Assembly (NCBI GenBank): GCA_002269645.1
Contig: NIVC01002971.1
Location: 64,287-128,286 of the forward strand
DNA length: 64,000 bases
Direction: 5' to 3'
DNA from: Macrostomum lignano
Taxonomy: Eukaryota
Shown here: positions 17,962 through 59,849 of the stretch, in pieces
Position numbering within the stretch: position 1 is the stretch's first letter
How the letters are laid out: each line of letters starts with the position of its first letter
Made by a program: the position numbers and the translations under genes
The notes under the pieces: model-generated
Databases searched by the model: none
Seen by the model: only the letters and a program-made list of their open reading frames with translations
Told to the model about the DNA's origin: nothing

Positions 17962-20182
17962 CCGGAGTTTTTGGCCCGCTCGGACTCAACTTTGGCTCGG
18001 GCCCAGCGCGCAACTTCTGGTTCCCAGAGCACGACCGTCGTTTCTTAATCCCCGGATTGCGACTTCCCCCATCATCATCAAGGACGAGTCCCCGGTCGAC
18101 AGCAGCGAACATCAAGCAAAGATCATCACCTGCTAGCTAACAGCGAAGATTGTGACGGCATCATTCCGAATCTACAGCTGCAGAGCATCGAGCCGATTCG
18201 GTCGCTGTGGATTACCTGGTCTCCGGCTGTTGAGTTTCTGATTGGTTGGGTGAGAGGCTACCTAGACTTGCTTGATTGGGTGATCCCTTGTCTGTCCCCT
18301 GTTGCAGTAGCTGAATTAGGCGCACACTTTTGCTCATTTTGTTCAGTGGTGCTGTTACTGAGGCAGAAATCATTCAATAATACTGCCAGTAGTCTGAAAC
18401 TCCAATTCGATCCGAAGTGTGAAGTGATCTAAGGAGAAGGTTAAATCTGACAGTTATTTTTATCGGTTTTAGTTCTTTGTTCGCCGATGGCTCAGATGAG
18501 TAGCTAAGCTAGTAGGCGCCGGTCACAGTGGACCAATGGCAAGGCGGTTCTCAGTCGATCAATCAATCAAATCAGTGAGCAAAACTGCCAGAAGTGCAGA
18601 ATCGGCGCCAGAGATGTACTTTGTGCACTCTAGGTTAGCCAAGCGGCTCGGGTAATGAATCATGCGGTCTCTGAAGTTCGAGTTAGTCTATCATCAGCGC
18701 TATGAGAGGCTAGTTGGCGCGTTGAAGGCCAAAAGTACATATCTTCGTATTTAGCAATGTAATAGTACATGTAGCTACCCCATAGACTCGCCACTGCAAG
18801 AATCCCCTGCACAAGTCCCCTCTGTACCTGCATGGCCAATGCGATCTAGTCCCAGCAGTGTCCCTTATCATCGGCTATGACTTCGAGATTGACAGCAAAA
18901 AGACACTAGTTGGCAGGTAAGTGCAAAGCCCCTTCTAGTCGGAAGCCCGATTTCGAGAGTCCCGGTGTGGTGAGCCAGGGCGTACGGGCTGGTGGCAGCA
19001 AGTTAGTTGATCTGCGGATTAGCTAATTTCTACTTTCAAAATTCTCCCTGCTCATCTCTCGCTGTCCCTCTCTTAGCTATAGGACCTAGACTGCTCGCCA
19101 CACGATCAAGCTACCATGGGGCTGACCATCTGACAGGAGTGGGGGCCAGGTCTCTAATTGATTTATTTCTGAGCCTGAGGCTCGAAGGCTTCCCTAACAA
19201 GGAGCCCGAAGGTCGAAACCCATCAATACATTTACATGTACATGTAGCACATAATTTATCAAATTGCGCAGTCATTGTGGGAGTCATTCAATATCAGTGT
19301 AGGTTTTGCAAGTGACTTTTTCCAGCTTTGGAACAAATGAAATTCTCACCCAAATCCCGCAGCTGCCTTTGATATGATCCCGACTCCACAATCGTACATG
19401 TACATGTAAAAAACCCATGCACTGTGCCCTTCTCACCTGTAGCTAGCCTTTTTATTAGAGCCAGGGGGCTGTGTGCACCCTGCCACACTAATTTAAGCGA
19501 GATTCAAATGGTAATTCATCAAAACATTATAGTTAAGACACGTCAGTCCCGGCAGTTGCGGGGGACACATGAAGTTGCCCAAAAGTTCACCAAAGCAGTC
19601 ACACATTGACGCATACATACGACAGCATGTGCAGTCGGCATTACATGTACACCAGAGCACAACACGGTAAAGCAACCTCCCAAGAAATTCTATCATAGAA
19701 ATAGTACAAAATTACCAAAATTAGCAATTGACGGGAAATTTATCAAAGCACAGCAATAATTCGAAAATTGTTTTACCTTTGTCTACAGCAAGACCATAGC
19801 TAAATTGCAACAGTACTCAAAGTAGTATGTGGTCTACATGTATATACATTTGGAGAAAAACAACACGGCTTCACACTAAATAATTGCATGCATTTTCGAA
19901 TTGCTTCCCCAAACACGATTAATGACGAATCTATGCATGAAAAATTGCAGAGCACCGCAAGCACGCGCATCCGTGATGACAGAGAGCACTTTCCTGGAGC
20001 TCCTTTCGGCAGAAAAAACAGTGCAAAACATTCTGTGGCCTTGGCCTTCAATTACAAGGAATTTGTTCGCATGAAGTGAAAACAGAAAAAAGTAGTGCCT
20101 GAAAATTTAAAAGGAGGACTAGCTTCATGACCTTAATGAGAATTGCTCTATTAAGCTGCATCTGACAACGGATCAATGGCGT

Positions 20183-31370
<11,188 letters not shown>

Positions 31371-32109
31371 AGATGGACGAACAGACAACAGACAGAGACT
31401 GACCTACATAGTCAGACACTAGCACAACAATTCCTAAAGTCTGCTTGTGCCCGACCATAAGTACATGCGTCGACATTGCGCATATCTATCTGATCTATGC
31501 ATTTCACACCTGCGCGCAGAGAAGAGCTTCCTAATTGCTAATTTCATAGCCAGCCGCGGGCCACCTTCAAGACCAGCTGTTTGACAGAGCAGGCGCAGAC
31601 TGTCGCACTGTTTTCCTGGGACTCGGGAATCAAAGCAATGCCATCACAAAGGCCAGCCGGTTTGCAGTTTTAAGCATTTATATCATCACAGACATCAAAT
31701 TACTGCGCCTCCTGGGCTGGGTGATTCTCATTTCTGCTTTGAGCAAATTACCTAATTAACAGCGCTGATTTCCGATACCTGCTGCTTTCTACTTGAGTTC
31801 CGGCTTCAAGAATGTCCTAGCATTGAAGTAAAGTATCACTCGCGAAAGTGGGAATCGAGTAAGGGGTTGCTAATCGGGGGTTGCTAGTTCCTGGTTCCCG
31901 AGATCGAGGGAGGCTGCCAGAGCTTCTGCTGGCTGGGGTCCTGGCTGTGCTTGGCCTGGCGGGTCAGCCTCCTGCAGCAACAACCGCAGCGGGAGGGCAG
32001 CAGTGCAGGATGAGCATCTTTTTTGAGTGCTCAGTGGAAACACTAAGAGAAGCGATGCTTTGCTAAGAGCGGCTAAACTAGCGTCCGCTGTGGGGTGAGT
32101 TGAGGGTCA

Positions 32110-32394
32110 TGGTAGCATCATCATCATCATCATCAACGACAACCTCATCTTCAACAACAAAAACATCATCAACAACAACAAAAGCAACAACAACAACATC
32201 CTCATCCACAACTAAAAAAACAACAACATCCTCATCTACAACTAAAACAACAACAACAACAACAACAACAATATCATCATTAACAACAACAACAACAAGA
32301 TCATCATCATCAACAACAACAACAACAACAACAACATCATCATTAACAACAACAACAACAACAACATCATCATCATTAACAACAACAACAACAG
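32110..32394. repeat. (CAA/CAT)n trinucleotide tract, left half of the gypsy 2 target
   Basis: Directly visible; resumes at 37094. Confidence 0.9.
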
Positions 32395-35300
32395 TGTTGT
32401 GGACAAGTTCTGCTATTTGTACGCTTTGTACAAGTGCGAATTCACATGTGCTTATGCTACGCTTGTATGCAGCTGGGAAGCTGTCTATGGTGCTGACGGC
32501 GCCTTGGGTACAGGCCCTCGGATGTGATCTGAGGCAAACAGCCCATAGGAAATAAAAGGAATAAGAAATAGCCAGAACTAAGGCTGCAAGCAGACCAAAA
32601 TCGGCTGCATTTTATTTTCTATCAAACCTCCGCCTTTTATTTGTTGGTTAAAGACACAACAATTGGCGTCGCAAGCAGGATATGTCCAAGAACACAGGGA
32701 AACTCCCATTGGACGATAAGTCACCCGCTAAGTTACCTGTGAAATCGCCTACCAAGTCACCTGCAAAGTCGCCCGCTAAGTCACCTGCAAAGTCGACCAC
32801 CAAATCACCTAGAGCTACGTCAAAGATGCCATTGCTGGGATTCGGTTCGACATTTCAAAGTCGTGGATATCAGCCATTCGAAGGCTTGTCCAACTGCCGC
32901 TCAATGACCAACATGGCTGAAATCGAGAAGCTTGAGGACGGCAAGATGTTCGAGCGTTGGCTAGACCGCTTCACCGTTGCTGCTCGCTTCTACCGTTGGT
33001 CAGATGAGGACATGGCTCAGGTTCTGCTAATGCGCTTGGCGCCATCACTATATGATGTATTAGCAGACCGCCTGTCGCCGGACGTCCCAAGCTCAAGGTC
33101 GTTCGAAGAACTGAAGACTGCGCTTCAGGAGATTCTTCTTCCGCAGACCTATGCGTTGGCTGAACGTTACACATTTCAGAATCTGAGGCGCGAGACGTCC
33201 GAGTCCGTCAGAGCGTTCGCGGAGCGGCTGCTTAAAGCATCGGACAAGTGTATGTTTGCTGATCGCGAAGAGCGTCTCCGAGACCAATTTATTTGTGGGT
33301 TAAACGACAAGGCGACAATAGCTAAACTACTGGTAAGGGACCACAAGGCGCTGACTTTTAAAGTAGCTGTGGCGGAAGCGGAGGCAATGTCGGCATTGAA
33401 GGACACGCAAATCATGCAGTCCGCAACAGGTCCGCGCACTGAAAGCGTCATGAAGGTGGGACGGAAGTTTCACACCAAGGCTCCGTCGAGACCGGCACGG
33501 CCGGCAGACAGGAAGCTTGGCATTCAGGCCAATTCCACAGCGAATATCAGATGCTCAAGATGTGGCGGAATGCACAAAAATAAGACCGAGTGTCCAGCAA
33601 AGGGAAAGACCTGTCGGAAATGTGGAAAGTCAAACCACTTCGAGAGGCAATGTAAGTCGAAAGGCGAAGGACAACACTTCGTGTCACAGACAAAAGATGC
33701 TCAATCGGATGACGTTCTGGCAGTTGTACACTCTACTTCGACCAGAAATGGATCTTTTCCGACTATCCCGTTGGAGTGCTTGGTCAACGGCCGAGATCAG
33801 ATGATTGAATGCCAGCTTGACACTGGAGCCACAGTGTCGGTGATGTCCAGCAGGTTGTGGAAGCAGCTGGGAGAACCTCTACTGCAGCCCAGTACAGCAG
33901 TCTTGATCGGGTATACGGACAGCCACCGGTTTGACCTGTTGGGCCAGCTCAAGATCCAAGCTGTGTGGAACAACCAAAAGTTTGTTGTCTTATTTCATGT
34001 CGTGTCTTCAAACAGAATGTTTGCTCTGCTTGGAAGAGACGTGGTGCACGTGGATCTCGAAGCAATCTCCATTGGACACAACCAGGTGCGCCAAGTTGAC
34101 CAAAAGTCACTAGTGGAAACAACGAGCAGATTTAAGGCACATCTAGAGCTAAAAATAGATGCCAGGCCAAAGTACATTAAAGCCCGTCCCGTGCCATTTG
34201 CGCTAAAAGAGAAGCTCAAGGCAGAGATCGATGAATTGCTAAAAGAAGGGATCATCGAGCCGGTCCAGTTCTCTAGTTGGGCATCGCCGATCGTACTCAT
34301 CCAAAAGCCAGACAAAACTCTTCGGTTATGCGTAGACTATAAACAGACAGTTAATCCACAACTCGTCGATGACAGTTACCCGTCTCCAACGCCGGAGGAA
34401 GCATTCTCGGCTGTTTCAGGGTGCAAGCTGTATACGATTTTAGATCTTAAGAAGGCTTATAATCAAATAGAACTTGACGAACCGTCGAAAGAGTTAACGG
34501 TCATGGCTACTCCTTTGGGGAATTTTCGCTATAATCGGCTTGTCTTTGGCATCAAGACGGCACGAGCATTTTCCAACGCTTCATCAGCGACGTAATCCAG
34601 GGCATCACGGGCTCTGTCGCTTATGTTGACGACATACTCATCGGCGGCCGAACCAGAGACGAGCTCAGACAGCGAGAGGCAGCCGTTAGGGATAGGCTAA
34701 CACGCCATCACCTCAAGATTAATGAAGCGAAGTGCCAGGTGGCAAAGAGCCGAGTCAGATTTCTTGGTTTCATTCTGGAGTCCGGGACGATCAAGCCGGA
34801 CGCAGAGAAAGTAAGGGCAATTCAGGAGATGACGGCTCCCAAGAACATTGCCGAATTGGAGTCCTTTCTGGGGCTAGTGAACTTCTGTGGACGATTCATC
34901 AGGAATCTGGCCGACCTGGTTGAACCGCTGTCGACTCTGAGGCGCAAGAATTGCGAGTTTGTGTGGACCAGCGTCCAAGAAGCAGCTTTTCAGAAGATCA
35001 AGGCGTCTCTAACTCAAAAGACGATGCTGATGTCCTACGATCCCGGCAAACCGCTCGAACTAGAGTGTGACGCTTCACAAGTTGCGATTGGGGGTGTCCT
35101 CAGCCAGGATGGAGTGCCAATCATCTTCATCAGCAAGATTTTGTCAGCGGCCGAAAGAAAGTACTCTCAAATTGAAAGAGAGGCATTGGCAATAGTTTGG
35201 TCAGTGCGGCGCTGCCACCGGTTCCTGTTTGGACGAGAGTTCACATTAGTCACAGATCATCGACCGCTTACCTATATATTTGGCCAAAACAGTAAACTAC

Positions 35301-37093
35301 CTGAAAGGGTATCTGCGAGATTACAGAGATGGGCCATCACTCTCTCAGGGTACAGTTACGTCATCACGTACAGGAAGTCGGCCGAAATGAAATCTGATTC
35401 GCTGTCGAGATTAGTTGCTCCAACTGCAGCAGTGTCTACTCATCATGTCGGACGGGTCCCACTGAGTGAACGCGGTCTCTTGAGCCTGCAGGAGGTTATC
35501 GTTCACACTCAGGAGTGTCCTGAACTGAGGAAGCTCACACATGCCATTGGAACTGGGCAATTCAATGACTCCGACATCCGATCCTACAAGCCAATTGCGG
35601 ATGAGTTGACAGTGCAGGACGGCGCGATCATTCGTGGAACCAAGTTGGTGGTTCCCATCACATTAAGGGAGAAGGCACTGGCCGCTGCCCATGGAGTGCA
35701 CCTCGGGATTGCGCGCACGAAATCTCTGCTACGAGAATACTACTGGTGGCCTCGGATGGACAAGATGGTGGAGTCACGTGTGGGAACATGCCAAGTCTGC
35801 AGGAAATCAAAGCCACGGAACAGAAACTTCTGCACGTCGTGGCCCAAGCCAGAGGGCCCATGGACCAGAGTCCACGTGGACTTTGCCGGTCCAATTGACG
35901 GGCACTACCTACTGGTGTTAGTGGACGCCTACTCCGGTTATCCAGAAGTGCACCTCACGAAAGACATGACATCAACTACCGTTGTCAACTGCTTCCGACG
36001 GACGTTTGCACAACAAGGTGTCCCAAATCAGCTCGTGTCAGACAACGGCCCCAGCTTCGTGAGCGAGGAGACGCGCCAGTGGTTAACAAGGGTCGGCTGC
36101 AACCCGATCACTACGCCCGCCTACCATCCCCAAAGCAACGGGCTAGCAGAGAGGTTCGTACGCACGATCAAGGAAGCGATCCGAGCGAACGGCCTGACAC
36201 AAGCCGCCATTGATCGATACTTGCTATTTTACCGAGCATCCGTTGGCGTAGGTGGAGCATCTCCAGCTGAACTACTGGTAGCCAGGAAGCTGCGAGCGCC
36301 GCTGCTGACAACACAGGTTACCTGGAAACCCGGGGAGAACCTGGTCTACCGGGCGGGTCAGCGAGTACAAGAGGCTACGCTTGTCTGTCCGAAGGGGTCC
36401 AACGCAGCAATAATAAAGGTTGGGCCAGAGAAATTTAAAAAAGCTCATTTGGATCAGCTGCAAAGGTTCTGCCCACGCAAAACATCGGAGGATCAGACAG
36501 AGAGGCTGGACAGTTCGGAAGGAAGCCACCCGGAAACTGCAGAGTGCACAATGAGAGGACTTGGACCAAGGCAAGACGAGCAAGCGCGGCCCTGCGAACC
36601 CGGAGGCGTGTCTGATACTGAAGTTGAGCCAGAGACTACGACGCCTGAGGCTATAGCACCCAGTGTCACTAAGAATGTGGCTCGCCCACAGACAGCAGAG
36701 CAACCGGAAGTGCGGCGAAGCTCGCGGTTGCAAGCCAAACCAAGAATTGACTACAAGGAATGAACTGCTAAGAGCCATGGAGTGCTTAAAGGGATTAGAC
36801 AGTTCTTTTTTGTAAAAGGAGGGAGGTGTTGTGGACAAGTTCTGCTATTTGTACGCTTTGTACAAGTGCGAATTCACATGTGCTTATGCTACGCTTGTAT
36901 GCAGCTGGGAAGCTGTCTATGGTGCTGACGGCGCCTTGGGTACAGGCCCTCGGATGTGATCTGAGGCAAACAGCCCATAGGAAATAAAAGGAATAAGAAA
37001 TAGCCAGAACTAAGGCTACAAGCAGACCAAAATCGGCTGCATTTTATTTTCTATCAAACCTCCGCCTTTTATTTGTTGGTTAAAGACACAACA
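32395..37093 (+). mobile_element. Ty3/gypsy LTR retrotransposon 2, full length and young
   Basis: 267-bp LTRs at 32395-32661 and 36827-37093 (TGTTG...CAACA; I found one difference, GCTGCAAG vs GCTACAAG). TSD AACAG at 32390-32394 and 37094-37098. PBS TGGCGTCGCAAGCAGGA at 32664-32680 (resembles tRNA-Ser 3' ends). PPT AAAAGGAGGGAGG at 36814-36826. Confidence 0.97.
32682..36763 (+). CDS. Gag-Pol polyprotein of gypsy 2 with a single 1-nt frameshift at ~34563
   Basis: Zinc knuckles (CSRCGGMH; CRKCGKSNHFERQC), protease LDTGA, RT (YVDD at 34622-34633), RNase H (LECDAS), integrase (HLG, CxxC, HVDFAGP, SDNGPSF, SNGLAER). GCA CGA GCA reads through as GCA CCG AGC ATT TTC CAA (APSIFQ) if one C is added. 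Confidence 0.93.
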
Positions 37094-37490
37094 AACAGCA
37101 TCATCATTGACAACAACAGCAACAACATCATCATCAACAACAACAACATCATCATCATCAACAACAACAACAACAGCATCATCAACAACAACAACATCAT
37201 AATCATCAACAACAACAACATCAACATCATTATCAACAACAACAACATCATCATCATCAACAACAACAACAACAGCATCATCAACAACAACAACATCATA
37301 ATCATCAACAACAACAACATCAACATCATTATCAACAACAACAACATCATAATCATCAACAACAACAACATCAACATCATTATCAACAACAACAACATCA
37401 TAATCATCAACAACAACAACATCAACATCATCATCAACAACAGCAATCACATTTTCAACAAAAACAACAACAACAACAACAACAACAGAA
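37094..37490. repeat. (CAA/CAT)n trinucleotide tract, right half of the gypsy 2 target
   Basis: Directly visible. Confidence 0.9.
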
Positions 37491-37818: not shown

Positions 37819-40590
37819 GCATCATCCCCCTCTGCATCATCCCTCAGCATCATCCCCCCTCAGAATCATTATTTCCCCTCAGCAGCATCCCCCCTCTTAA
37901 ATCATTAATTCCCCTCTGCATCACCCCCCTCAGAATCATCCCCCCTCAGAATCATTATTTTCCCTCAGCATCATCCCCCGCAGAATCATTATTTTCCCTC
38001 AGCATCATCCCCCCTCAGAATCATTATTTTCCCTCAGCATCATCCCCCCTCAGAATCATTATTTTCCCTCAGCATCATCCCCTCTCAGAATCATTATTTT
38101 CCCTCAGCATCATCCCCCCTCAGAATCATTATTTTACCTCAGAATCATCCCCCCTCAGAATCATTATTTTACCTCAGAATCATCCCCCCTCAGAATCATT
38201 ATTTTCCTTCAGAATCATCCCCCTCAGAATCATCCCCCCTCAGAATCATTATTTTCCCTCAGAATCATCCCCCTCAGAATCATTATTTTACCTCAGAATC
38301 ATCCCCCCTCAGAATCATTATTTTCCCTCAGAATCATCCCCCTCAGAATCATCCCCCCTCAGAATCATTATTTTCCCTCAGAATCATCCCCCTCAGAATC
38401 ATTATTTTACCTAAGAATCATCCCCCCTCAGAATCATTATTTTCCCTCAGCATCATCCCCCCGCAGAATCATTATTTTCCCTCAGCATCATCCCCCCTCA
38501 GAATCATTATTTTCCCTCAGCATTTATTTTACCTCAGAATCATTATTTTACCTCAGAATCATTATTTTCCCTCAGCATCATCCCCCTCAGAATCATTATT
38601 TTACCTCAGAATCACCCCCCTCAGAATCATTATTTTACCTCAGCATCATCCCCCCTCAGAATCATTATTTTCCTTCAGAATCATCCCCCTCAGAATCATC
38701 CCCCCTCAGAATCATTATTTTCCCTCAGAATCATCCCCCTCAGAATCATTATTTTACCTCAGAATCATCCCCCTCAGAATCATTATTTTCCCTCAGAATC
38801 ATCCCCCTCAGAATCATCCCCCCTCAGAATCATTATTTTCCCTCAGAATCATCCCCCTCAGAATCATTATTTTACCTAAGAATCATCCCCCCTCAGAATC
38901 ATTATTTTCCCTCAGCATCATCCCCCGCAGAATCATTATTTTCCCTCAGCATCATCCCCCCTCAGAATCATTATTTTCCCTCAGCATTTATTTTACCTCA
39001 GAATCATTATTTTACCTCAGAATCATTATTTTCCCTCAGCATCATCCCCCTCAGAATCATTATTTTACCTCAGAATCACCCCCCTCAGAATCATTATTTT
39101 ACCTCAGCATCATCCCCCCTCAGAATCATTATTTTCCCTCAGAATCATCCCCCCTCAGAATCATTATTTTCCCTCAGAATCATCCCCCCGCAGAATCATT
39201 ATTTTCCCTCAGCATCATCCCCCCTCAGAATCATTATTTTCCCTCAGAATCATCCCCCCTCAGAATCATTATTTTCCCTCAGCATCATCCCCTCTCAGAA
39301 TCATTATTTTCCCTCAGAATCATCCCCCCTCAGAATCATTATTTTACCTCAGAATCATCCCCCCTCAGAATCATTATTTTCCCTCAGAATCATGCCCCTC
39401 AGAATCATCCCCCCTCAGAATCATTATTTTCCCTCAGAATCATCCCCCTCAGAATCATTATTTTACCTCAGAATCATCCCCCCTCAGAATCATTATTTTC
39501 CCTCAGAATCATCCCCCTCAGAATCATTATTTTACCTCAGAATCATCCCCCCTCAGAATCATTATTTTACCTCAGAATCATCCCCCCTCAGAATCATTAT
39601 TTTCCCTCAGAATCATCCCCCTCAGAATCATCCCCCTCAGAATCATTATTTTCCCTCAGAATCATCCCCCCTCAGAATCATTATTTTACCTCAGAATCAT
39701 CCCCCCTCAAAATCATTATTTTCCCTCAGAATCATCCCCCCTCAGAATCATTATTTTACCTCAGAATCATCCCCCCTCAGAATCATCCCCCCTCAGAATC
39801 ATCCCCCCTCAGAATCATCCCCCCTCAGAATCATCCCCCCTCAGAATCATCCCCCCTCAGAATCATTATTTTCCCTCAGAATCATCCCCCCTCAGAATCA
39901 TTATTTTCCCTCAGAATCATTATTTTCCCTCAGAATCATCCCCCTCAGAATCATTATTTTACCTCAGAATCATTATTTTACCTCAGAATCATTATTTTAC
40001 CTCAGAATCATTATTTTACCTCAGAATCATCCCCCTCAGAATCATCCCCCCTCAGAATCATTATTTTCCCTCAGAATCATTATTTTCCCTCAGAATCATT
40101 ATTTTACCTCAGAATCATTATTTTACCTCAGAATCATTATTTTCCCTCAGCATCATCCCCCTCAGAATCATTATTTTACCTCAGAATCACCCCCCTCAGA
40201 ATCATTATTTTACCTCAGAATCATCCCCCTCAGAATCATTATTTTACCTCAGCATCATCCCCCCTCAGAATCATTATTTTCCCTCAGAATCATCCCCCTC
40301 AGAATCATTATTTTACCTCAGAATCACCCCCCTCAGAATCATTATTTTACCTCAGCATCATCCCCCCTCAGAATCATTATTTTTCCTCAGAATCATCCCC
40401 CTCAGAATCATTATTTTACCTCAGAATCATCCCCCTCAGAATCATTATTTTACCTCGGAATCATCCCCCTCAGAATCATTATTTTACCTCAGCATCATCC
40501 CCCCTCAGAATCAATTTTTTTCCTCAGAATCATCCCCCTCAGAATCATTATTTTACCTCGGAATCATCCCCCTCAGAATCATTATTTTCC
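37819..40590. repeat. ~2.8-kb two-module minisatellite: CAGAATCATCCCCC(C)T (15-16 bp) and CAGAATCATTATTTT(C/A)CCT (19 bp)
   Basis: Directly visible; the 401-aa ORF at 39392 is an artefact of it. Confidence 0.95.
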
Positions 40591-40826
40591 CATATAATGC
40601 CTTGAGACGCGCCCTGTGACACTAGAGACTATCCAGTGTACTTTGTTGTTGTTTCCCTCAGAATCATTATTCCCCTCAGCATGATTCCCTAAGGTACAAC
40701 CTGCAGGTGCAGGTATTTATTGGTGATCATCTTAAAGCGTCACACTCGTTCGTTCTTCGCTACGTAGAAGTTGAGCAGCTCGTCGGAAAAAAAGCTCTTT
40801 TTAGACCTAGACCTTAGACCTTTTAG

Positions 40827-41228
40827 TCTTTGGCCGGACCCAAGTGAAAAGGGAATTCGGTTCTGCAGTCTATGGCCGGACCCAAGTGGGAAAGATGCAG
40901 TCTATGGCCGGACCCAAGTGGGGAAAAACGGTTCTGCAGTCTATGGCCGGACCCAAGTGGGGAAAAACGGTTCTGCAGTCTATGGCCGGACCCAAGTGGG
41001 GAAAAACGGTTCTGCAGTCTATGACCGGACCCAAGTGGGGAAAAACGGTTCTGCAGTCTATGGCCGGACCCAAGTGGGGAAAAACGGTTCTGCAGTCTAT
41101 GGCCGGACCCAAGTGGGGAAAAACGGTTCTGCAGTCTATGGCCGGACCCAAGTGGGGAAAAACGGTTCTGCAGTCTATGGCCGGACCCAAGTGGGGAAAA
41201 TGCACACTCTATGGCCGGACCCAAGTGA
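40827..41228. repeat. 39-bp minisatellite GTCTATGGCCGGACCCAAGTGGGGAAAAACGGTTCTGCA, about 11 copies including degenerate end units
   Basis: Direct tandem copies with no unique spacers. Confidence 0.93.
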
Positions 41229-41639
41229 GAAAGAAATACCACCTAGAGCAAGCTGTACTTACAATGCCATAATTCGGTTAGCTTTAAAGTGCAAGCGAAA
41301 TCTGTGACAAAAAGCGACAGCAATAGCAAAATCAAAGACAGAGAGAGAGAATGCAAAGCCGTGAATTATGTTTGGACGGTGCCCAAATTAGAGTCATTAA
41401 CATGCAATGCCGCCTAAAAGCAGTGCGCCAGAGCAGCTTGAAAAGCTTTTAAATGTAAAAGCTTCATTCCTGATTAGAAGGCATGACGTCATGCAGGCTC
41501 AAACTGATTTCACACGTGCCTTACTGGCTAATCTTGCGCATAGTTGTCGACCTTTGCTTAGCGACTCGGATCCTGAGCCTCCCGTCTTGAGTAAAGACAA
41601 ATTTACTGTGTTCAAGCAAGACTATCCTCAGTTGCTGGT

Positions 41640-42626: not shown

Positions 42627-44549
<1,923 letters not shown>

Positions 44550-46986: not shown

Positions 46987-47241
46987 ACAGCTCAGCCGCA
47001 GCTATTGAGCAGCGCAACCAAAGGCTGCGCACGGCTCTTCAGTCCAAGGACCAGGGAGTCGCCACACACCCTCAATTACCCCAGTTAATGCTGGTACCCT
47101 TTTACAGCTGGTTGAGCTGTAAAATGCAATGTGAGATTTAAATGTCTTGCTCAAAGAAACAAATTGTTCCGAATGGATCGAGAAACGAATCTCAGGCCTT
47201 TCTGTCATGAGTCCGACGCTCTGCCCACTTGGCTACAACCC
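46987..47241 (+). mobile_element. SINE/LINE 3'-tail-like interspersed repeat, copy 2
   Basis: Homologous to 9441-9680; runs directly into the 18-bp array. Confidence 0.6.
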
Positions 47242-49189
47242 TCACTAGGCTACAACCCCACACTAGGCTACAGCTACAGCCCCTCACTAGGCTACAACCC
47301 CACACTAGGCTACAGCTACAGCCCCTCACTAGGCTACAACCCCACACTAGGCTACAGCTACAGCCCCTCACTAGGCTACAACCCCTAGGCTACTACCCCT
47401 CACTAGGCTACAACCCCTCTAGGCTACTACAGGCTACCCCTCACTAGGCTACAACCCCACACTAGGCTACAGCTACAGCCCCTCACTAGGCTACAACCCC
47501 TCACTAGGCTACAGCTACAGCCCCTCACTAGGCTACAACCCCTCACTAGGCTACAACCCCACACTAGGCTACAGCTACAGCCCTCACTAGGCTACAACCC
47601 CTCACTAGGCTACAACCCCTCACTAGGCTACAACCCCTCACTAGGCTACAACCCCTCACTAGGCTACAACCCCTCACTAGGCTACAACCCCTCACTAGGC
47701 TACAACCCCACACTAGGCTACAGCTACAGCCCCTCACTAGGCTACAACCCCTCACTAGGCTACAACCCCTCACTAGGCTACAATCCCACACTAGGCTACA
47801 ACTCCCCCATTAGGCTACAACTCCCCCATTAGGCTACAACTCCCCCATTAGGCTAAAACTCCCCCATTAGGCTACAACCCCTCACTAGGCTACAATCCCA
47901 CACTAGGCTACAATCCCACACTAGGCTACAACCCCTCACTAGGCTACAACCCCACACTAGGCTAAAACCCCTCACTAGGCTAAAACCCCTCACTAGGCTA
48001 CAACCCCTCACTAGGCTACAACCCCTCACTAGGCTACAACCCCTCACTAGGCTACAATCCCACACTAGGCTACAACTCCCCCATTAGGCTACAACTCCCC
48101 CATTAGGCTACAACTCCCCCATTAGGCTACAACCCCTCACTAGGCTACAATCCCACACTAGGCTACAATCCCACACTAGGCTAAAACCCCTCACTAGGCT
48201 ACAACCCCTCACTAGGCTACAACCCCTCACTAGGCTACAATCCCACACTAGGCTACAACTCCCCCATTAGGCTACAACTCCCCCATTAGGCTACAACTCC
48301 CCCATTAGACTACAACTCCCCCATTAGGCTACAACCCCTCACTAGGCTACAACCCCTCACTAGGCTACAACCCCTCACTAGGCTACAACCCCTCACTAGG
48401 CTACAACCCCTCACTAGGCTACAACCCCTCACTAGGCTACAACCCCACACTAGGCTACAGCTACAGCCCCTCACTAGGCTACAACCCCTCACTAGGCTAC
48501 AACCCCTCACTAGGCTACAATCCCACACTAGGCTACAACTCCCCCATTAGGCTACAACTCCCCCATTAGGCTACAACCCCTCACTAGGCTACAATCCCAC
48601 ACTAGGCTACAATCCCACACTAGGCTACAACCCCTCACTAGGCTACAATCCCACACTAGGCTACAACCCCTCACTAGGCTACAACCCCACACTAGGCTAA
48701 AACCCCTCACTAGGCTAAAACCCCTCACTAGGCTACAACCCCTCACTAGGCTACAACCCCTCACTAGGCTACAACCCCTCACTAGGCTACAACCCCACAC
48801 TAGGCTACAACTCCCCCATTAGGCTACAACTCCCCCATTAGGCTACAACTCCCCCATTAGGCTACAACCCCTCACTAGGCTACAATCCCACACTAGGCTA
48901 CAATCCCACACTAGGCTACAACCCCTCACTAGGCTACAACCCCCCATTAGGCTACAACCCCTCACTAGGCTACAATCCCACACTAGGCTAAAACCCCTCA
49001 CTAGGCTACAACCCCTCACTAGGCTACAACCCCTCACTAGGCTACAACCCCTCACTAGGCTACAATCCCACACTAGGCTACAACTCCCCCATTAGGCTAC
49101 AACTCCCCCATTAGGCTACAACTCCCCCATTAGGCTACAACTCCCCCATTAGGCTACAACTCCCCCATTAGGCTACAACCCCTCACTAG
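47242..49189. repeat. ~1.95-kb 18-bp minisatellite (CACTAGGCTACAACCCCT)n with variants
   Basis: Directly visible; the unit equals the last bases of the adjacent SINE-like element. Confidence 0.95.
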
Positions 49190-50108: not shown

Positions 50109-50444
50109 AACTCTGTAACTCATCAGAACAGAAACTGTAAGCATGTGAAGTTTGTCTGCTTTTTCTGTTGTTTGTGCCACTCACTCACTCATTCCCCCCA
50201 GAGCCAGACCAAGGGTTAGCGATAGGGCTGAATGTACATGGCAATGTACAGTGTTTTGGAAAAGCTTTATTTATAGCCTTCTCTGTAGCCCGTTTAGAGG
50301 CTACGCTTAGCCATGACAGTTAAGTGAGAAATTCTAACCACTGTCCTCTGTATGGGCAAGCTCTGCAGCAGTTTAACAAAGAATTGCAATTTGCAAATCA
50401 AGGCAGCATGGTTTGTAAAAGCGAAATATTTATAAAAAAGCGAT

Positions 50445-52513
50445 GCAATGGGGGGTTAACTGGAAGAGAGAACTCCAGGCAACGGCCAAAGCCACGAGCG
50501 GCGCTAGCCGCGAGTGGAAATTTGGCCGTTGCCTGGAGTTCTCTCTTCCAGTTAACTTCATTGCAGGAAATATCTATGGCACGAATCGAAGTGGCCCAGA
50601 AGGAGGAGGCACAAACGTCTATGGCACGAAAGCCAAAAGGCGTGGAGAGTTCATGGCAATGACAATCCTATTGATTGAATGGAGGGTTGAAATGTCTATG
50701 GCAAAACTTTCAGTGGGGGTGAAGGGGTTTGTGTGAGGGATTCCCCGGCAGTAAGTAGTCTGTCCAAACCTGTTGATTCAAGAGTTTTCTGTCCATCATG
50801 AGCGACCCGATAATACATTATATTAATTGGGGTAACCTCCCGTGTGAGGACCTCGGCAACATCACGCAGGATGAACTGAACTTCCTCTCGGAATCCTCTG
50901 CCGTTGATCGGCACGACGAAGATTTCGATGCGTTCCTGAAGTATGTCCAAAATGGTCCAGCTGATACTGGGCTGCCAATGATCGATGGAGATGAAAAGAT
51001 AGACGTTTCCGAGATGGACAGAATCGAGATCGAGAGTCTGCCTGAGGATACTCGGAAGCAGATGTACCAGCATGGCCAACGTTTTCGAGACTTCCTGGAA
51101 GGGGAGAATCTGCGCAACATTCAGCATGTCAAAAATCCTACATTGAACCAATATCTTCGGTACTTCTACTTCAAGCTGAAGAAACAGGATGGCTCGTTCT
51201 ACTCGCCGGCCTCTCTCATCTGTATCCGGGCTGGAATTCAGCGTTTCCTACGCATGGTTCTGAAGCTGCCTGTCGATATAATCGGTGGTGAGGAATTCAA
51301 TTCCTGCAACGAGATGCTGCGTGTCAAGGTTCGTGATTTCCATCGAGATGGTGGCTGCACCAGGCAGTATGAACCAATTGAAGAAGGCGACATGCAGAAG
51401 TTGCGGTGCTACTTTGAAGGGACTACGGCTGAAATCGAGCAGGCTAAATTTCTGTTCTATGTTCTTTACTCCTTTGGAGAGCGTGGCCAGGAGCATCTGA
51501 AGTTCCTGAGACAAAGGGACTCGCTTGAATTGCACACGGATTCTGACGGCAAAGAGTACTACTGTCTTCCTGCTCTGCCAACGAAGAATAAGTCAGCCGA
51601 TCCTGTGAAGGCGAAGGCCAGGCCGGACAACAAACAAGCTCGGATCTACGACACGGCCAAAGTGAGGAGATATCTACAACTGCTACCTCCAACAACCAAG
51701 GACAACCATCTGTTCCCGCGTCCACTATCCAACACGGATTCCAATGGACAGCCTATGTTCTCAACAAAGCAGAATCGCGGGGAGAACTACTTCCTGCGTT
51801 TCATGCGAAACTTGAGCGAGAAGGCCGGTTTGTCCAAGATGTACACGAATCATTGCATTCGGTAAGCCTTTTTCTTCATATTGCTTTAAACCAGTTGCAT
51901 ATTTTCTATGCAATACTTTATTTCTGTTGTAGAGTGAGCAGGATTGCTGATCTAGAGGCTGCTGGGTACAACCTGGCTGACATCATGTCGATAACCGGTC
52001 AGGTTTCTGAGAGGACAACTCGCCGTTACCTGTCCAAGCGCCGTGATCGCTCGCTGCAGTCTACCAGTGAGGCTGTTTCTATGGCACTTGATTTGAATGG
52101 TTCTTCACAAGCTGTTGCGACTCCATTGCGTGAGAGTTCACCGGTGCCAGTACCTGTGTCGTCTTCCGTGCAGATCACCGGCATCAGTCATGACAATCCG
52201 TCGGTCAGGTACAGTTTCCACAACTGTTCATTCAATGGCTGCAAATTTGAGTAATGGACTCAACCGTCGTATTTTCTGGACTTTCTCCTGCTGTCGTGAT
52301 GAGAACATGACCATAGGTTAGACTTGCACTCAATTGACTAAGCAGTGTTATTGTTGGAACATTTTTTGTTGGACAAAAAAAAATATAAGAATTTCACGCT
52401 TCGTGTTACTTTTTTCGCCTATGGTATTGTTGTCCAGTCTTGTTTTTTTACCTCCAGAAAATGGCCGGTCATTGTCCGGAGGTCATTGCCATGAACAAAT
52501 ATTTCGGGCAATG
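50445..52513 (+). mobile_element. Crypton-like tyrosine-recombinase DNA transposon, apparently full length (ends inferred)
   Basis: GCAATG direct repeat at 50445-50450 and 52508-52513; perfect 36-bp inverted arms at 50455-50490 and 50521-50556; TCTATGGC motifs; YR gene. An alternative left end exists at 50240-50247 (GGCAATGT). Confidence 0.7.
50798..52254 (+). CDS. Crypton-type tyrosine recombinase (DUF3504/CryptonA-like), join(50798-51861, 51933-52254), 461 aa
   Basis: A 71-bp GTAAGC...TAG intron joins NHCIR|VSRI. Catalytic set: R in FGERGQEH, K in TKNK, HxxR (NHCIR), GH position read as TGQ, Tyr in RRYL. Also YFYFKLKKQDGSFYSPASLICIRAGIQRFL and a C-terminal FHNCSF, typical of CryptonA/KCTD1/ZMYM-type domains. 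Confidence 0.88.
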
Positions 52514-52844
52514 CAATACAACCCTACTAAATTAGTCACACCATGGAAATGGAAATTTTAACATTAAGTTTCACTCAAAGGTACTTTAAAATTTACATGG
52601 CCTTTTACGAAATGCGCATTTCCTTGGTTGTTAGACCGATGCAGACTGCAGTGGAGCTGGAGATACACAAATTTCTCCTTGGGCTGCAAATTGGCCAGAA
52701 AGATGACGTGATCAAAGCATGAGATTGAGAACAACCATGGAGTACTAAGTTTCACAAGCTGGCTTTCGTATCAGGGATGGGCAGAATTTTACCTCAAAGG
52801 CCAGATAAAGAATCCAACTCATGGCTGCGGGCCAGATGAGACTG

Positions 52845-55104: not shown

Positions 55105-57175
55105 CTCTGCGTCCCAGCTATCAGCCCTCATTCCTCCCAGCTATCTGCCCCATTCCTCCTAGCTATCTGCCCCATTCCTCCAGCTATCAGCCCTCATTCC
55201 TCCCAGCTATCTGCCCCATTCCTCCTAGCTATCTGCCCCATTCCTCCCAGCTATCAGCCCTCATTCCTCCTAGCTATCTGCCCCATTCCTCCTAGCTATC
55301 TGCCCCATTCCTCCTAGCTATCCGCCCCCATTCCTCTCAGCTATCCGCCCCATTCCTCCCAGCTATCTACCCCATTCCTCCTAGCTATCCGCCCCCATTC
55401 CTCCCAGCTATCTGCCCCATTCCTCCTAGCTATCCGCCCCCATTCCTCCCAGCTATCTGCCCCATTCCTCCTAGCTATCCGCCCCCATTCCTCCCAGCTA
55501 TCTGCCCCATTCCTCCTAGCTATCCGCCCCCATTCCTCTCAGCTATCCGCCCCATTCCTCTCAGCTATCCGCCCCATTCCTCTCAGCTATCCGCCCCCAT
55601 TCCTCTCAGCTATCCGCCCCCATTCCTCTCAGCTATCCGCCCCCATTCCTCTCAGCTATCCGCCCCATTCCTCCCAACTATCTGCCCCATTCCTCCCAGC
55701 TATCCACCCCCATTCCTCCCAGCTATCTGCCCCATTCCTCCCAGCTATCTGCCCCATTCCTCCCAGCTATCTACCCCATTCCTCCTAGCTATCCGCCCCC
55801 ATTCCTCCCAGCTATCTGCCCCATTCCTCCTAGCTATCCGCCCCCATTCCTCCCAGCTATCTGCCCCATTCCTCCTAGCTATCCGCCCCCATTCCTCCCA
55901 GCTATCTGCCCCATTCCTCCCAGCTATCTGCCCCATTCCTCCCAGCTATCTGCCCCATTCCTCCTAGCTATCTGCCCCATTCCTCCTAGCTATCTGCCCC
56001 ATTCCTCCCAGCTATCCGCCCCATTCCTCCCAGCTATCCGCCCCCATTCCTCCCAGCTATCTGCCCCATTCCTCTCAGCTATCCGCCCCCATTCCTCTCA
56101 GCTATCCGCCCCCATTCCTCCCAGCTATCTGCCCCATTCCTCCTAGCTATCCGCCCCCATTCCTCTCAGCTATCCGCCCCATTCCTCCCAGCTATCTGCC
56201 CCATTCCTCCCAGCTATCCACCCCCATTCCTCCCAGCTATCTGCCCCATTCCTCCCAGCTATCTGCCCCATTCCTCCCAGCTATCTGCCCCATTCCTCCT
56301 AGCTATCTGCCCCATTCCTCCTAGCTATCTGCCCCATTCCTCCCAGCTATCTGCCCCCTTCCTCCTAGCTATCTGCCACATTCCTCTCAGCTATCCGCCC
56401 CCATTCCTCCCAGCTATCCGCCCCCATTCCTCCTAGCTATCCGCCCCCATTCCTCCCAGCTATCTGCCCCCTTCCTCTCAGCTATCCGCCCATTCCTCTC
56501 AGCTATCCGCCCCATTCCTCTCAGCTATCCGCCCCCATTCCTCTCAGCTATCCGCCCCCATTCCTCCCAGCTATCTGCCCCATTCCTCCTAGCTATCCGC
56601 CCCCATTCCTCTCAGCTATCCGCCCCATTCCTCCCAACTATCTGCCCCATTCCTCCCAGCTATCCACCCCCATTCCTCCCAGCTATCTGCCCCATTCCTC
56701 CCAGCTATCTGCCCCATTCCTCCTAGCTATCTGCCCCATTCCTCCCAGCTATCCGCCCCCATTCCTCCCAGCTATCTGCCCCATTCCTCCCAGCTATCTG
56801 CCCCATTTCTCCCAGCTATCCGCCCCCATTCCTCTCAGCTATCCGCCCCCATTTTTCTCAGCTATCCGCCCCCATTCCTCCCAGCTATCCACCCCCATTC
56901 CTCTCAGCTATCCGCCCCCATTCCTCTCAGCTATCTGCCCCATTCCTCCCAGCTATCTGCCCCATTCCTCCCAGCTATCTGCCCCATTCCTCCCAGCTAT
57001 CTGCCCCATTTCTCCCAGCTATCCGCCCCCATTCCTCCCAGCTATCCACCCCCATTCCTCTCAGCTATCCGCCCCATTCCTCTCAGCTATCCGCCCCCAT
57101 TCCTCTCAGCTATCCGCCCCCATTCCTCTCAGCTATCCGCCCCCATTCCTTCCAGCTATCCGCCCCATGCGCCCC
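55105..57175. repeat. ~2-kb 22/23-bp minisatellite (CCAGCTATCTGCCCCATTCCTC / CTAGCTATCCGCCCCCATTCCTC)n
   Basis: Directly visible. Confidence 0.95.
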
Positions 57176-57799
57176 AGCTTATTGTGTATACTTTAAGTAG
57201 AATAGAATTGAATATCGGATTATTATATGAATATAATATTCCGACTCTATGACGTCAATACATGACTCGAAGCAAAGGTCACGGACAAAAAAATGAGGCA
57301 AGAGGAACAGAGGGTATTTGCACAGTACAAGATTCGCAAACAAGTGTGTTAGTAGAAGTTCATGAAGCAAAGAAGCCCCAACACACATCTGCTTCCGTAG
57401 CCGTGTGAGCAGTGAGAACAGTTTTAAAAACGTAGCTTTAGATGAAGCCGCATCTCACAGGTGAATTTCATGCATCCAGCGGGCAATGTTGCCTCCCCAC
57501 CTCTCACTCGCCTGTCCTACAGAAATTCGCTATCTTTCAAAGCAAGAGGCGGCTGAGATTGTAGCGAAGGAAACCTCGGGTCGACTGCTCCGTTGCTCAA
57601 TCTGCAAGTTGCGTGCGCGACAGACGGAAGCTTCTGGCAGCATGAAGATGGGCAGTTGCTGAAGACGTCACAGACAGCTAGCATTAGCTTTAACTAGATG
57701 CAACTGCTGTTCATGTGTGCAATATGATGTTTTATTTATCATATTTTGCAAGACTTTATGACAACGCTCTATTTCATTTAAATTAAAAAATTAAAAAAC

Positions 57800-58115
<316 letters not shown>

Positions 58116-59102
58116 GTAGGGCACGGTCACAATTCAGACATGCTCTGCGCATTTTTTGCAACAAAATCATTAAATTTGGAAGCGCAAAAGTGAACTGGAG
58201 ATGCGACAAAATATAAATAAGATAATTTTTCTTATCGAGATTATACGGTAGTCGGTTTCGCGGCATGCTACTCAAGCTACTTGGCAAAGTAGTCTAAATG
58301 GAATCGCTTATGAAATATTTTTGAAAACATACTATTTATTTCACCATATTTAATCATGCCTTTAGTTTCAACTTAAAAAAATTGTTTTAATTCGTATGAT
58401 TTCAATGGTCCTTGACTTTCAGATTGAACGTCCTGTTTTATCTGACATGAGCTAATCATCAGTCTTCCCTGAGCACAGCGCTGAGTAGAGTTTCGCCATA
58501 GACAAAACTTTGGTCGGGAAAAAACTGCGACCGCGACTTCTGACTGTTCTGCCAGCTCAACGACGTCATCAGCCTCCTAATGCAACGCTATTCCCATTTT
58601 TTTGCTCTAAAATATGTGAAAGACACAGTGCCGTGTCCAGGATTATCCATTGGGGGATCCATTCCATATCCATATCCATCCAAGGACCTTATTTGGGGTT
58701 GCAACAAAGTTCGCCTCTGCGAACGCCACTGAAAAGAAAAAACCCCCTCTCGTACACCCGTTGCTATACGGTTTGCGAAGCGGCCTGGGTTGTATTGCAT
58801 TTTCTTTGTACATGTGCCTTAAGTTAGTGTAGTAGCGCTGAATGTGTTTGTACATTTAAAAAAGAGAACTTCAGTTTTTACGCTAGGGAGTGTACTGTGC
58901 CAAGTGTACACTTTACTGTCCGACCGCATATACTACATGTACTTCTCTATTCCCGCTCTGCTCTCCCTTCCCCCCTCCCCCAGTTCGTGTGTACACTGCA
59001 CAGTGCATAAAACCCGGCCCTTCATGGAATTGCCGCGGGTTTTCCTTCGTTTAATAAAACCGTAGCAAGAATTAAGCTTTAATATTATTAAAAACTGCTG
59101 AT

Positions 59103-59849
59103 ATGGCTTCGCCTCTGTCAGGCCATGAGATCCAAATGGACTATTCTCAATGGGAGAATCGGCTGCAGTCCATCGCAGCTCACTGGTACCCGCAGTACAT
59201 TCAGCCATGTCAGCTGGCTGACAGCGGCTTCTATGCTCTTCCCAACAGCCAGGGCGAAGCCACTTGCTTCAGTTGCGGCTGCAGTATCAGCGACTGGTCC
59301 CGCCACACCAACGCCTGGCTGCCACACGCCCTGCGGTCTCCTCAGTGCCAGCATCTCCGCCTGCAGCTGGACCAACGGCCTGACATCCTGCTGGAGTTCA
59401 TCGTGCGCCCGATGCTGCAGCAGCCCCGACAGGACCAGCTCATCTGGTCCCTGCTCACCGGTCTAAGCACCGAAACAGCTCAGACTCTGGCGGCGAACCC
59501 TCGGGCTGCCGAGCTGCTGCAGCTCCGTCAACAGCCCACAGAGGCTCAGCGGTTGCGAAGCCTCGGAGATGAGCAGCTGCCGCAGCAGGCCAGAGACCTA
59601 GCGGCGAAGTGCGCCGTCTTCAACCGGCCAGCCCAGTTTCCCGGCTTCGAAACCGCGGACGAAGTCAAGATGCCCGCCGGTCTGGAATGTCGGATCTGCT
59701 TCGCCCAGCCGCTGCAGGTTCTCCTGCTGCCGTGCGGGCATCTCTGCTGCTGCCGGAGCTGCTTCGGCCGGATCAGCATGGAACAGCGGGCCAGGTGTCC
59801 GATCTGCAGAGCTCACCTGGATGCTCACCTGAGTGTCCGAATCACCTAG
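59103..59849 (+). CDS. Inhibitor-of-apoptosis (IAP) family protein, one BIR plus C-terminal RING, intronless, 248 aa
   Basis: BIR: RLQS..W...LADSGFY...CFSC-x16-H-x6-C. RING: CRICFAQPLQVLLLPCGHLCCCRSC...CPICR. Confidence 0.92.
   Translation: MASPLSGHEIQMDYSQWENRLQSIAAHWYPQYIQPCQLADSGFYALPNSQGEATCFSCGCSISDWSRHTNAWLPHALRSPQCQHLRLQLDQRPDILLEFIVRPMLQQPRQDQLIWSLLTGLSTETAQTLAANPRAAELLQLRQQPTEAQRLRSLGDEQLPQQARDLAAKCAVFNRPAQFPGFETADEVKMPAGLECRICFAQPLQVLLLPCGHLCCCRSCFGRISMEQRARCPICRAHLDAHLSVRIT

Follow-up and report, generated by a model that had tools for sequence, protein, structure and literature searches.

Crypton transposons bounded by a CAATG repeat and beginning with a conserved DNA hairpin

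Cryptons are the least understood order of eukaryotic DNA transposons, and no transposition assay exists for them. The CryptonA elements of animals, the source of the domesticated DUF3504 genes ZMYM2-4 and QRICH1, are DNA elements of about 2 kb that encode only a tyrosine recombinase, lack long terminal or inverted terminal repeats, and give rise to non-autonomous derivatives that keep only the ends (PMC3212892). Published work states that no terminal repeats were found in animal Cryptons and lists them as "n.d." (PMC3212892). Here we analyzed a 64,000-nucleotide stretch of Macrostomum lignano DNA (contig NIVC01002971.1, positions 64,287 to 128,286; hereafter the window), in which an earlier note had described two divergent Crypton-like elements with a shared end architecture. 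Every feature described in the note is present in the sequence, and the arrangement is not due to chance. The interpretation offered in the note is partly supported: its proposals of a fixed CAATG crossover core and of a shared architecture hold, whereas its proposed roles for the subterminal boxes and for the palindrome remain inferences from sequence. We found no description of this architecture in the literature we could search, consistent with the note's claim of novelty.

Anatomy of the two elements

The large element (50445-52513) is an intact tyrosine-recombinase transposon of 2,069 bp, comparable in length to CryptonA-1_OL (2,073 bp). It is bounded by direct GCAATG repeats at 50445-50450 and 52508-52513. 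A left-end hairpin extends from CAATG to an inverted CATTG (50446-50563) and contains perfect 36-nt arms at 50455-50490 and 50521-50556, which start 4 nt inside the left repeat, with a GGGG/TT mismatch next to the core. The predicted fold has a free energy of -61.7 kcal/mol (z = -15). The apex of the hairpin (50492-50517) reads CCAC-GA-GCGGC-GCTA-GCCGC-GA-GTGG, a GC mini-hairpin with a G..A loop and a symmetric GA/GA internal loop on the sense strand. The hairpin ends in the inverted core CATTGC (50559-50564), and the segment 50559-50573 includes an inverted copy of the right terminus (CATTGCAGGAAATAT versus ATATTTCGGGCAATG at 52499-52513). An Rfam scan of 50300-52700 returned only a sub-threshold mir-207 match on the palindrome (23 bits against a gathering score of 88, E = 0.28), which we treat as an artefact of any long hairpin.

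Downstream of the hairpin lies an array of direct boxes (50573-50702), with TCTATGGC at 50573, 50618 and 50695 and TTCATGGC at 50650. An additional TCTATGGC at 52078, not mentioned in the note, lies inside the coding sequence. We also identified a perfect 15-nt subterminal inverted repeat, GTTCATGGCAATGAC, at 50649-50663 and 52482-52496. The right-end block (52450-52496) carries GGTCATTG twice (52467-52474 and 52481-52488) and the inverted box GCCATGAA (52488-52495). A 10-nt complementarity between the left flank (50422-50431) and the right end (52497-52506) was judged to be chance.

The recombinase gene (50798-52254, forward strand) encodes 461 amino acids in two exons, 50798-51861 and 51933-52254 including the stop codon, separated by a GT..AG intron at 51862-51932. 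The catalytic residues R229, K263, H352 and R355 are invariant or nearly invariant among relatives and the tyrosine lies in RRY, while the fifth catalytic position is Q (TGQ) in this clade and H (TGH) in distant members. The protein hits Phage_integrase and QRICH1 weakly, the latter at E = 0.003, below Pfam's cut-off, and does not hit DUF3504. Of 14 aligned family members, 12 hit QRICH1, 9 hit Phage_integrase and 4 hit DUF3504, so that the CryptonA designation used here rests on domain hits alone. The closest solved structure is XerA (6.8e-6). One spliced ORF was found in the 2,069 bp, with no reverse transcriptase, other transposase or other enzyme gene and no other domain hits. An exact-protein look-up of the ORF returned no match.

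The small element (12509-13344) is an 836-bp internally deleted element of a distant lineage, bounded by CAATGT at 12509-12514 and 13339-13344. Its left-end hairpin (12509-12625; -38.2 kcal/mol, z = -10) has arms unrelated to those of the large element, and its apical module at 12553-12579 reads AGCT-GA-AGCCGC-GTA-GCGGCT-GA-AGCT. The palindrome starts directly after CAATGT, at 12514-12515, and not 10 bp inside the left end as the note had stated. Its inner core is a degenerate CATTATTG; a strict CAATG...CATTG hairpin scan of the window found only the large element. The segment 12621-12637 is an inverted copy of the right terminus (ATTGTACCCTTTTGACT versus AGACAAAAGGGAACAAT at 13326-13342). Boxes (12645-12796) are found as TCTATGGC at 12645 and 12734 and as TTTATGGC at 12789, the last two within a 42-bp direct repeat (12707-12748 / 12762-12803), and an inverted ACCATAGA lies at 13321-13328. 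Both elements lack long terminal, inverted terminal or split direct repeats: the extreme termini are not inverted repeats, and subterminal inverted repeats of 15-17 nt and a one-sided hairpin are present instead. A truncated ORF (12908-13240, forward strand) is homologous only to the N-terminal part of the recombinase (residues 6-119; tblastn, 28% identity, E = 1e-7). It gave no Pfam hit and no catalytic domain is present, so the element is non-autonomous. A possible third recombinase remnant at 58748-58843 on the minus strand (tblastn, E = 0.43) was rejected as not significant.

The small element interrupts a Ty3/gypsy-like pol reading frame on the minus strand (10745-15207). Removing 12515-13344, thereby joining 12514 to 13345, restores one continuous frame through AAPLRTLLTKNAQWNW, with a single CAATGT read as Thr-Leu. 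A partial second copy of the small element at 21113-21888 (forward strand) lacks the left arm, and (CAGA)n abuts its hairpin apex. This copy is not an independent insertion, but belongs to an 8.5-kb tandem duplication (12587-21113 = 21130-29659).

Across the window, TCTATGGC occurs 18 times against 1.94 expected, an enrichment of about nine-fold, and 0 of 100 shuffles reached 18. Nine of the 18 occurrences lie in one 39-bp satellite and two in a segmental duplicate.

Ends, hairpins and boxes in relatives

We next compared contigs from other samples that encode relatives of the recombinase at 28-71% protein identity (designated L001 onward). These are short metagenome and read-assembly contigs; L002, L003, L020 and L021 do not extend far enough upstream to show the left end or hairpin. 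At least eight element families or copies carry CAATG at their ends, with flanks that diverge immediately after it. In one family, P0009 (L004-L007), CAATG(T) is present at both ends in four contigs with four different flanks. L008 has ACAATGAA at both ends, and the right ends of L010, L012, L013 and L014 finish in CAATG. Different Cryptons abut head-to-tail on one shared CAATG in L004, L012 and L013; L015 also holds two recombinase genes in tandem, across an unresolved junction. These results, together with the in-frame empty site of the small element, indicate that CAATG is a fixed crossover core, with 6-8 bp of identity per insertion, and not a random duplication. The core is specific to a clade, however, since one distant family (L009 and the first element of L015) uses ATAAT. 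For the large element itself, neither a second copy nor an empty site is present in the window, and its ends rest on analogy and on the right-end block, the only well-conserved stretch of the 3' non-coding region compared with L001. L001 stops about 15 nt short of the expected terminus.

The note's proposal of a shared architecture with a conserved palindrome is strongly supported and can be extended. A generic scan for the apical module over 106.6 kb on both strands hit nine distinct hairpins, including the two in the window, and nothing else. Eight carry unrelated arm sequences, L012a and L012b being two copies of one family, and each sits at the same place, directly after the left core. A tenth hairpin (L016) has the module too. 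The apex consists of a GC-rich mini-hairpin with a G(N)NA loop flanked by GA on both sides. GA/GA is found in eight of the nine hairpins, with AA/GC in L013, and all nine loops read G..A. Both features lie on the recombinase-sense strand wherever the orientation is known. The hairpin is not universal: L008 (43% identity) and L010, which have CAATG ends (37-44% identity), have no convincing large hairpin (z = -0.1 for L008), and L011 and the L015 junction show no apical module. In simulated circle junctions the stem extends across the junction by 8-28 pairs, with 28 pairs for the small element.

The boxes are conserved islands in the alignment with L001 and are also present in L003; they are conserved in the 71% and 45% relatives. 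In L001 both arms of the 15-nt subterminal inverted repeat carry the matching change GC to TT/AA. More distant families have different boxes, many of which contain CATTG. Finally, the intron sits at the same codon phase, after HC[I/V]R, in the window element, L001, L008 and L010, which argues for mobility at the DNA rather than the RNA level.

A proposed mechanism and its alternatives

Taken together, we consider it more likely than not that both segments are CryptonA-type DNA transposons, the large one autonomous and the small one an internally deleted passenger of a distantly related lineage. In this view they would move by conservative site-specific recombination at CAATG plus 1-3 matching flanking bases. 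Recombination between the two directly repeated cores would excise a circle and leave one CAATG behind, and the reverse reaction would insert the circle at any genomic CAATG, preferentially at the CAATG ending a resident Crypton, thereby producing head-to-tail arrays. The sequence just inside the hairpin mirrors the right terminus, so in the circle the palindrome would span the junction. Family-specific boxes, here TCTATGGC and CCGGnACAAT(G/C), lie in direct orientation on the left and inverted on the right, and plausibly would bind the recombinase and pair the ends. Because the apex breaks the palindrome in the same way, on the gene-sense strand, in nearly all families, we infer that the hairpin acts when folded, as extruded cruciform or single-stranded DNA. 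It would then present a CAATG/CATTG duplex as the recombination site or act as a strand-specific priming site. The analysis itself establishes the anatomy, the boundaries, the fixed core and the conservation across families, whereas the circle intermediate, binding to the boxes and the function of the folded DNA are inferred. No circle junction was observed among the sequences examined; L006 begins ATAA-CAATG, which matches its own right end, but four bases cannot separate a circle from a tandem copy. Furthermore, there is no local dyad symmetry around the core in duplex form, unlike classical recombinase sites. The note had suggested that the palindrome is a cruciform origin or enhancer that explains copy gain. 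This remains a hypothesis: the conserved strand asymmetry argues for a folded single-strand or cruciform function, but the sequence cannot tell a replication origin from a recombination site.

The alternative that survives best, although we regard it as less likely, is that the hairpin works as RNA or as ordinary duplex DNA, as a 5'-leader structure or a palindromic promoter or insulator element controlling recombinase expression, with the boxes as transcription-factor or core-promoter sites. The hairpin and boxes always lie upstream of the ORF on the sense strand, and tandem G.A pairs are stable in RNA as well, so a role in a transcript is not excluded. A single TCTATGG lies about 65-120 nt upstream of the ATG in L001, L003, L009 and L013 and about 330 nt upstream in L011, while L008 and L010 carry CCAAT-box-like TCATTGGCTG repeats there instead. 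For the boxes, a promoter role is therefore an equal rival to recombinase binding, which the note had proposed. In contrast, the hairpin starts 0-5 nt from the left boundary, and a promoter that transcribes it would have to lie outside the integrated element. Its base is the crossover core and the inverted copy of that core, the boxes recur inverted at the right end, and in other families boxes contain the core motif CATTG. In addition, G(N)NA loops closed by C-G are classic stable DNA mini-loops.

Other readings are very unlikely. The palindrome could be a separate foldback or MITE-like insertion, or a by-product of past rearrangement, a possibility the note had set as a test of its own proposal. 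Palindromes are fragile, the copy at 21.1 kb is broken exactly at the hairpin apex, and L008 lacks a clear hairpin. However, this reading is largely refuted by the constant position of the nine hairpins, their shared asymmetric apex, the core at their base, and retention of the hairpin in a non-autonomous element that kept only the ends. Similarly, the recombinase could act like a telomere resolvase and produce a linear, hairpin-capped intermediate, since telomere resolvases are tyrosine-recombinase relatives that act on palindromes and the copy at 21.1 kb begins at the apex. Yet element boundaries lie at CAATG, 25-60 nt from the centre of symmetry, in every resolved case, the centre is a non-palindromic 3-4-nt loop, and the only solved-structure matches are XerA and an integrase. 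Although only two independent insertions exist in the window, ordinary target-site duplication at arbitrary sites is refuted by the same pentamer bounding at least eight families or copies from unrelated samples, tyrosine recombinases do not create duplications, and published guidance describes Crypton terminal repeats as similar across all copies (PMC8969392).

Comparison with known systems

Relative to described CryptonA elements, what is new here is that the ends are defined, by a CAATG direct repeat, a left-end hairpin and subterminal boxes. Such a signature would allow annotators to find complete elements and their non-autonomous derivatives, gives biochemists concrete substrates, and raises the testable possibility that a eukaryotic tyrosine recombinase uses folded DNA. 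A small recombinase with a short fixed core and a portable cis site could also be of interest as a genome-engineering tool.

A fixed core has a precedent in the CryptonF and CryptonS elements of fungi, oomycetes and diatoms, which have terminal direct repeats of 4-6 bp interpreted as recombination substrates, most CryptonS sharing TATGG termini. Those elements belong to different recombinase clades with accessory domains (GCR1_C, C48 peptidase), and no hairpin has been described for them. In the present elements TATGG appears inside the box TCTATGGC rather than at the terminus, which may be a coincidence. DIRS retrotransposons likewise encode a tyrosine recombinase, have an internal sequence complementary to their inverted termini and presumably form a circular intermediate, but they encode reverse transcriptase and RNase H and move through RNA, whereas here there is no reverse transcriptase and a conserved intron is retained. 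Tyrosine-recombinase integrative elements of Vibrio are reported to circularise with a strand bias (PMC9345347), a precedent for copy-out-like behaviour, although they are bacterial, have multiple genes and show no comparable hairpin.

A functional comparison can be drawn with integron attC sites and the CTX-phage attP hairpin, bacterial tyrosine-recombinase substrates that act as folded single strands. The comparison concerns how the elements may work and not family membership, since on domain hits the protein belongs to the eukaryotic QRICH1/DUF3504 lineage and not to the IntI or XerCD family, attC lies at the 3' end of a cassette that has no recombinase gene, and single-stranded intermediates are not in evidence here. 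A further reading, which we consider unlikely but not excluded, is that CryptonA transposons recombine through the folded hairpin with the CAATG/CATTG stem base as the site, only one strand being exchanged and host replication completing the event. If so, this would be the first eukaryotic counterpart of integron attC or CTX-phage integration, and would explain how a recombinase-only element can increase in copy number without a replicase and build head-to-tail arrays. As in attC and CTX attP, the Crypton hairpin is an imperfect palindrome whose structure, not sequence, is conserved, the core and inverse core form the base of the stem, unpaired bases make the two strands non-equivalent, and inserted units are found in head-to-tail arrays.

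Identity of the two elements

The features that the earlier note listed for the two segments are all present in the sequence, and its observation is therefore confirmed. In the large segment, GCAATG lies at 50445-50450 and 52508-52513, and a perfect 36-nt inverted repeat at 50455-50490 / 50521-50556 surrounds GCGGC-GCTA-GCCGC. The box TCTATGGC occurs at 50573, 50618 and 50695, TTCATGGC occurs at 50650, and the inverted GCCATGAA occurs at 52488. In the small segment, CAATGT lies at 12509-12514 and 13339-13344, the palindrome has the centre GCCGC-GTA-GCGGC, and boxes occur at 12645, 12734 and 12789, with an inverted ACCATAGA at 13321. These features are not chance. TCTATGGC occurs 18 times against 1.9 expected, and none of 100 shuffles reached 18, although nine of those copies lie in one satellite and two in a duplicate. 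Furthermore, the two hairpins fold at z = -15 and z = -10 against shuffled sequence.

The window is from an animal genome rich in satellites. It contains host-type ORFs for a BIR + RING (IAP-like) protein at 59103-59849 (+) and a ubiquitin-conjugating enzyme domain at 7847-8437 (-), which indicate an animal host, as well as LTR retroelements. One of these, at 32394-37094, has 269-bp LTRs at 99.6% identity (32394-32662 / 36826-37094) and ORFs that carry protease, RT, RNase H and integrase domains; each LTR contains one TCTATGGT, probably by chance. About a third of the window is tandem repeat, including multi-kb (CAGA)n arrays, with (AGAC)n and (CTGT)n microsatellites in opposite orientations, and several 18-35-bp satellites (28731-31396, 42628-44549, 37927-40591, 47226-49189 and 55112-57179).

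The large segment carries one gene, at 50798-52254, with a 71-nt GT..AG intron, and nothing else is encoded in its 2,069 bp. The 461-aa product keeps the tyrosine-recombinase catalytic residues and hits Phage_integrase and QRICH1 weakly, and its family profile matches XerA among solved structures. Relatives include Macrostomum lignano "Tyr recombinase domain" proteins at about 50% identity, and more distant relatives carry DUF3504. We provisionally assign the element to the CryptonA lineage described by Kojima and Jurka (PMC3212892). In contrast, the small segment keeps only an ORF fragment, 28% identical to recombinase residues 6-119, and is therefore an internally deleted, non-autonomous element of a different clade.

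Element boundaries and the CAATG core

The small element interrupts a Ty3/gypsy-like pol frame on the minus strand. Joining 12514 to 13345 keeps one CAATGT and gives one continuous frame through the conserved ...AAPLRTLLTKNAQWNW... motif, and the element is therefore a true insertion bounded by the repeat. The large element has no second copy or empty site in the window, and thus we turned to contigs encoding relatives, which came from other samples. The P0009 family (38% identity) was recovered in four contigs, L004-L007, all of which share the element sequence and have CAATG(T) at both ends, with flanks that differ directly after it. Similarly, the contig L008 has ACAATGAA at both ends, and the right ends of L010, L012, L013 and L014 finish in CAATG. 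Per-insertion identity is 6-8 bp, which matches the overlap length typical of tyrosine recombinases. A distant family at 28% identity (L009 and the first element of L015) uses ATAAT instead. Based on these results, we conclude that CAATG is a fixed crossover core, as the earlier note had proposed, that it is clade-wide, and that it is not a random duplication.

In L004 (1688-1750), L012 (about 2150) and L013 (about 2037), which are metagenome and read-assembly contigs, different or identical Cryptons abut head-to-tail on a single shared CAATG. L015 also carries two recombinase genes in tandem (700-1140), although its junction was not resolved. This pattern suggests that the end of a resident element is a preferred target. 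Additionally, L006 begins (1-20) with ATAA-CAATG-TAGAG, which is the element's own right end joined to its left end through one core. This is compatible with either a circle junction or a tandem copy, as four bases are too few to decide between them.

Hairpin and subterminal boxes

In both window elements the palindrome starts at the core and ends in an inverted core, which is CATTGC at 50559-50564 in the large element and a degenerate CATTATTG in the small one. The next 15-17 nt inside are an inverted copy of the right terminus. When the ends are joined as in a circle, the stem extends across the junction by 8-28 further pairs in six elements. The same layout appears in L004 (two families), L009, L012 (two copies), L013, L014 and L016, with arm sequences that are unrelated between families. 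One L004 family has a hairpin (1-95) with three successive GA/GA internal loops (GGAC-GA...GA-GTCC repeated) and a nested inner CAATG...CATTG pair around the apex, and L013 carries, in addition to its left-end hairpin, a long perfect palindrome at its right end (about 1950-2035; centre TAATGTCA-CTTT-TGACATTA).

The apex of the hairpin is conserved. It consists of a short outer stem, GA, a 5-7-bp GC-rich stem, a 3-4-nt loop (GCA, GTA, GTTA, GCTA or GATA), the return stem, GA, and the outer stem again. A generic scan of 106.6 kb on both strands for any 2x2 internal loop below a GC-rich mini-hairpin found only these Crypton hairpins, nine of them distinct. Eight have GA/GA and L013 has AA/GC, and all loops read G..A on the recombinase-sense strand wherever the orientation is known. 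A duplex palindrome bound by a symmetric protein would carry GA on one arm and TC on the other, whereas a conserved GA on both arms breaks the symmetry and distinguishes the strands. Tandem G.A mismatches and G(N)NA loops closed by C-G are stable single-strand motifs. We therefore infer that selection acts on a folded strand, either cruciform or single-stranded DNA, although a folded transcript cannot be excluded.

The hairpin of the small element also marks the left junction of an 8.5-kb tandem duplication at 99.97% identity (12587-21113 and 21130-29659). This junction lies exactly at the hairpin apex, where (CAGA)n replaces the left arm. In copy 2 the inner 28 nt of the right arm are the exact reverse complement of the left arm of copy 1, whereas the right arm of copy 1 itself differs there. 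This suggests breakage at the hairpin tip or templated correction within the palindrome, but an assembly artefact is also possible.

Against L001, a relative at 71% identity, the non-coding ends are poorly conserved apart from a few islands, namely TTCATTG, the TCTATGGC boxes and a 45-nt right-end block containing GGTCATTG twice. The perfect 15-nt inverted repeat GTTCATGGCAATGAC (50649-50663 / 52482-52496) changes GC to TT in both arms in L001. L003 (45% identity) also has TCTATGG boxes, including an inverted pair at its 3' end. More distant families have other boxes, often containing CATTG: L004 has CATTGTCTGGACAC three times and L012 has TCATTGTTGACC. In place of TCTATGGC boxes, L008 (180-320) and L010 (25-120) carry repeated TCATTGGCTG / CTGATTGG motifs upstream of the ORF, which are inverted CCAAT-box-like and contain CATTG. 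Within the window, a 39-bp satellite of about 10 copies at 99% identity (40825-41227 and 41391-41409) has a unit that contains TCTATGGCCGGAC, that is, the Crypton box plus the start of the CCGGAC box. About 190 bp downstream lies GAGTCATTAACATGCAATG, which resembles the right end of L001 (GGTCATTAACATGAAG) followed by the core. This may be a third, degraded Crypton-derived element whose subterminal repeats expanded into a satellite.

The box patterns fit recombinase-binding sites, as the earlier note had suggested, ones that co-evolve with the enzyme. However, a single TCTATGG lies about 65-120 nt upstream of the start codon in L009 and L013, and further upstream in L011, so that a promoter role is a serious rival.

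Proposed mechanism and relation to described Cryptons

The interpretation offered in the earlier note is supported only in part. The anatomy, the fixed core and the architecture shared among families rest directly on the sequence analysis, whereas passage through a circle, recombinase binding at the boxes and any role of the folded hairpin are inferred. The best-supported reading has two tiers. The first, which we consider likely, is conservative recombination at CAATG through a circle, the Goodwin model for Cryptons, in which the boxes would hold the ends together. The recombinase intron sits at the same position and phase, within the Arg codon of HC[I/V]R, in four families at 37-71% identity (window 51862-51932; L001 about 1313; L008 about 1367; L010 about 1141), which argues for DNA-level mobility, although L002 and L003, two further relatives, lack it there. 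The second tier, that the hairpin acts in folded form, is more tentative and at best about as likely as not. In this view the hairpin could act as the recombination site itself, like attC or CTX attP, or as a strand-specific priming site, and either would explain copy gain without a replicase; the earlier note had suggested a cruciform replication origin or enhancer for the excised circle. Against this mechanism, no circle junction was seen among the sequences examined, L008 lacks a clear hairpin, and there is no dyad symmetry around the core in duplex form.

A literature search on Cryptons with CAATG, a hairpin or a palindrome found no description of this architecture, although existing Repbase consensus sequences may contain the features unremarked. 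A 2022 curation guide gives a short direct repeat as the only distinguishing feature of Cryptons. Kojima and Jurka state that no terminal repeats were found in animal Cryptons, and their table lists CryptonA terminal repeats as "n.d." (PMC3212892). We regard the two elements described here as probable CryptonA members whose ends differ from that description in carrying a CAATG direct repeat together with a hairpin at the left end.
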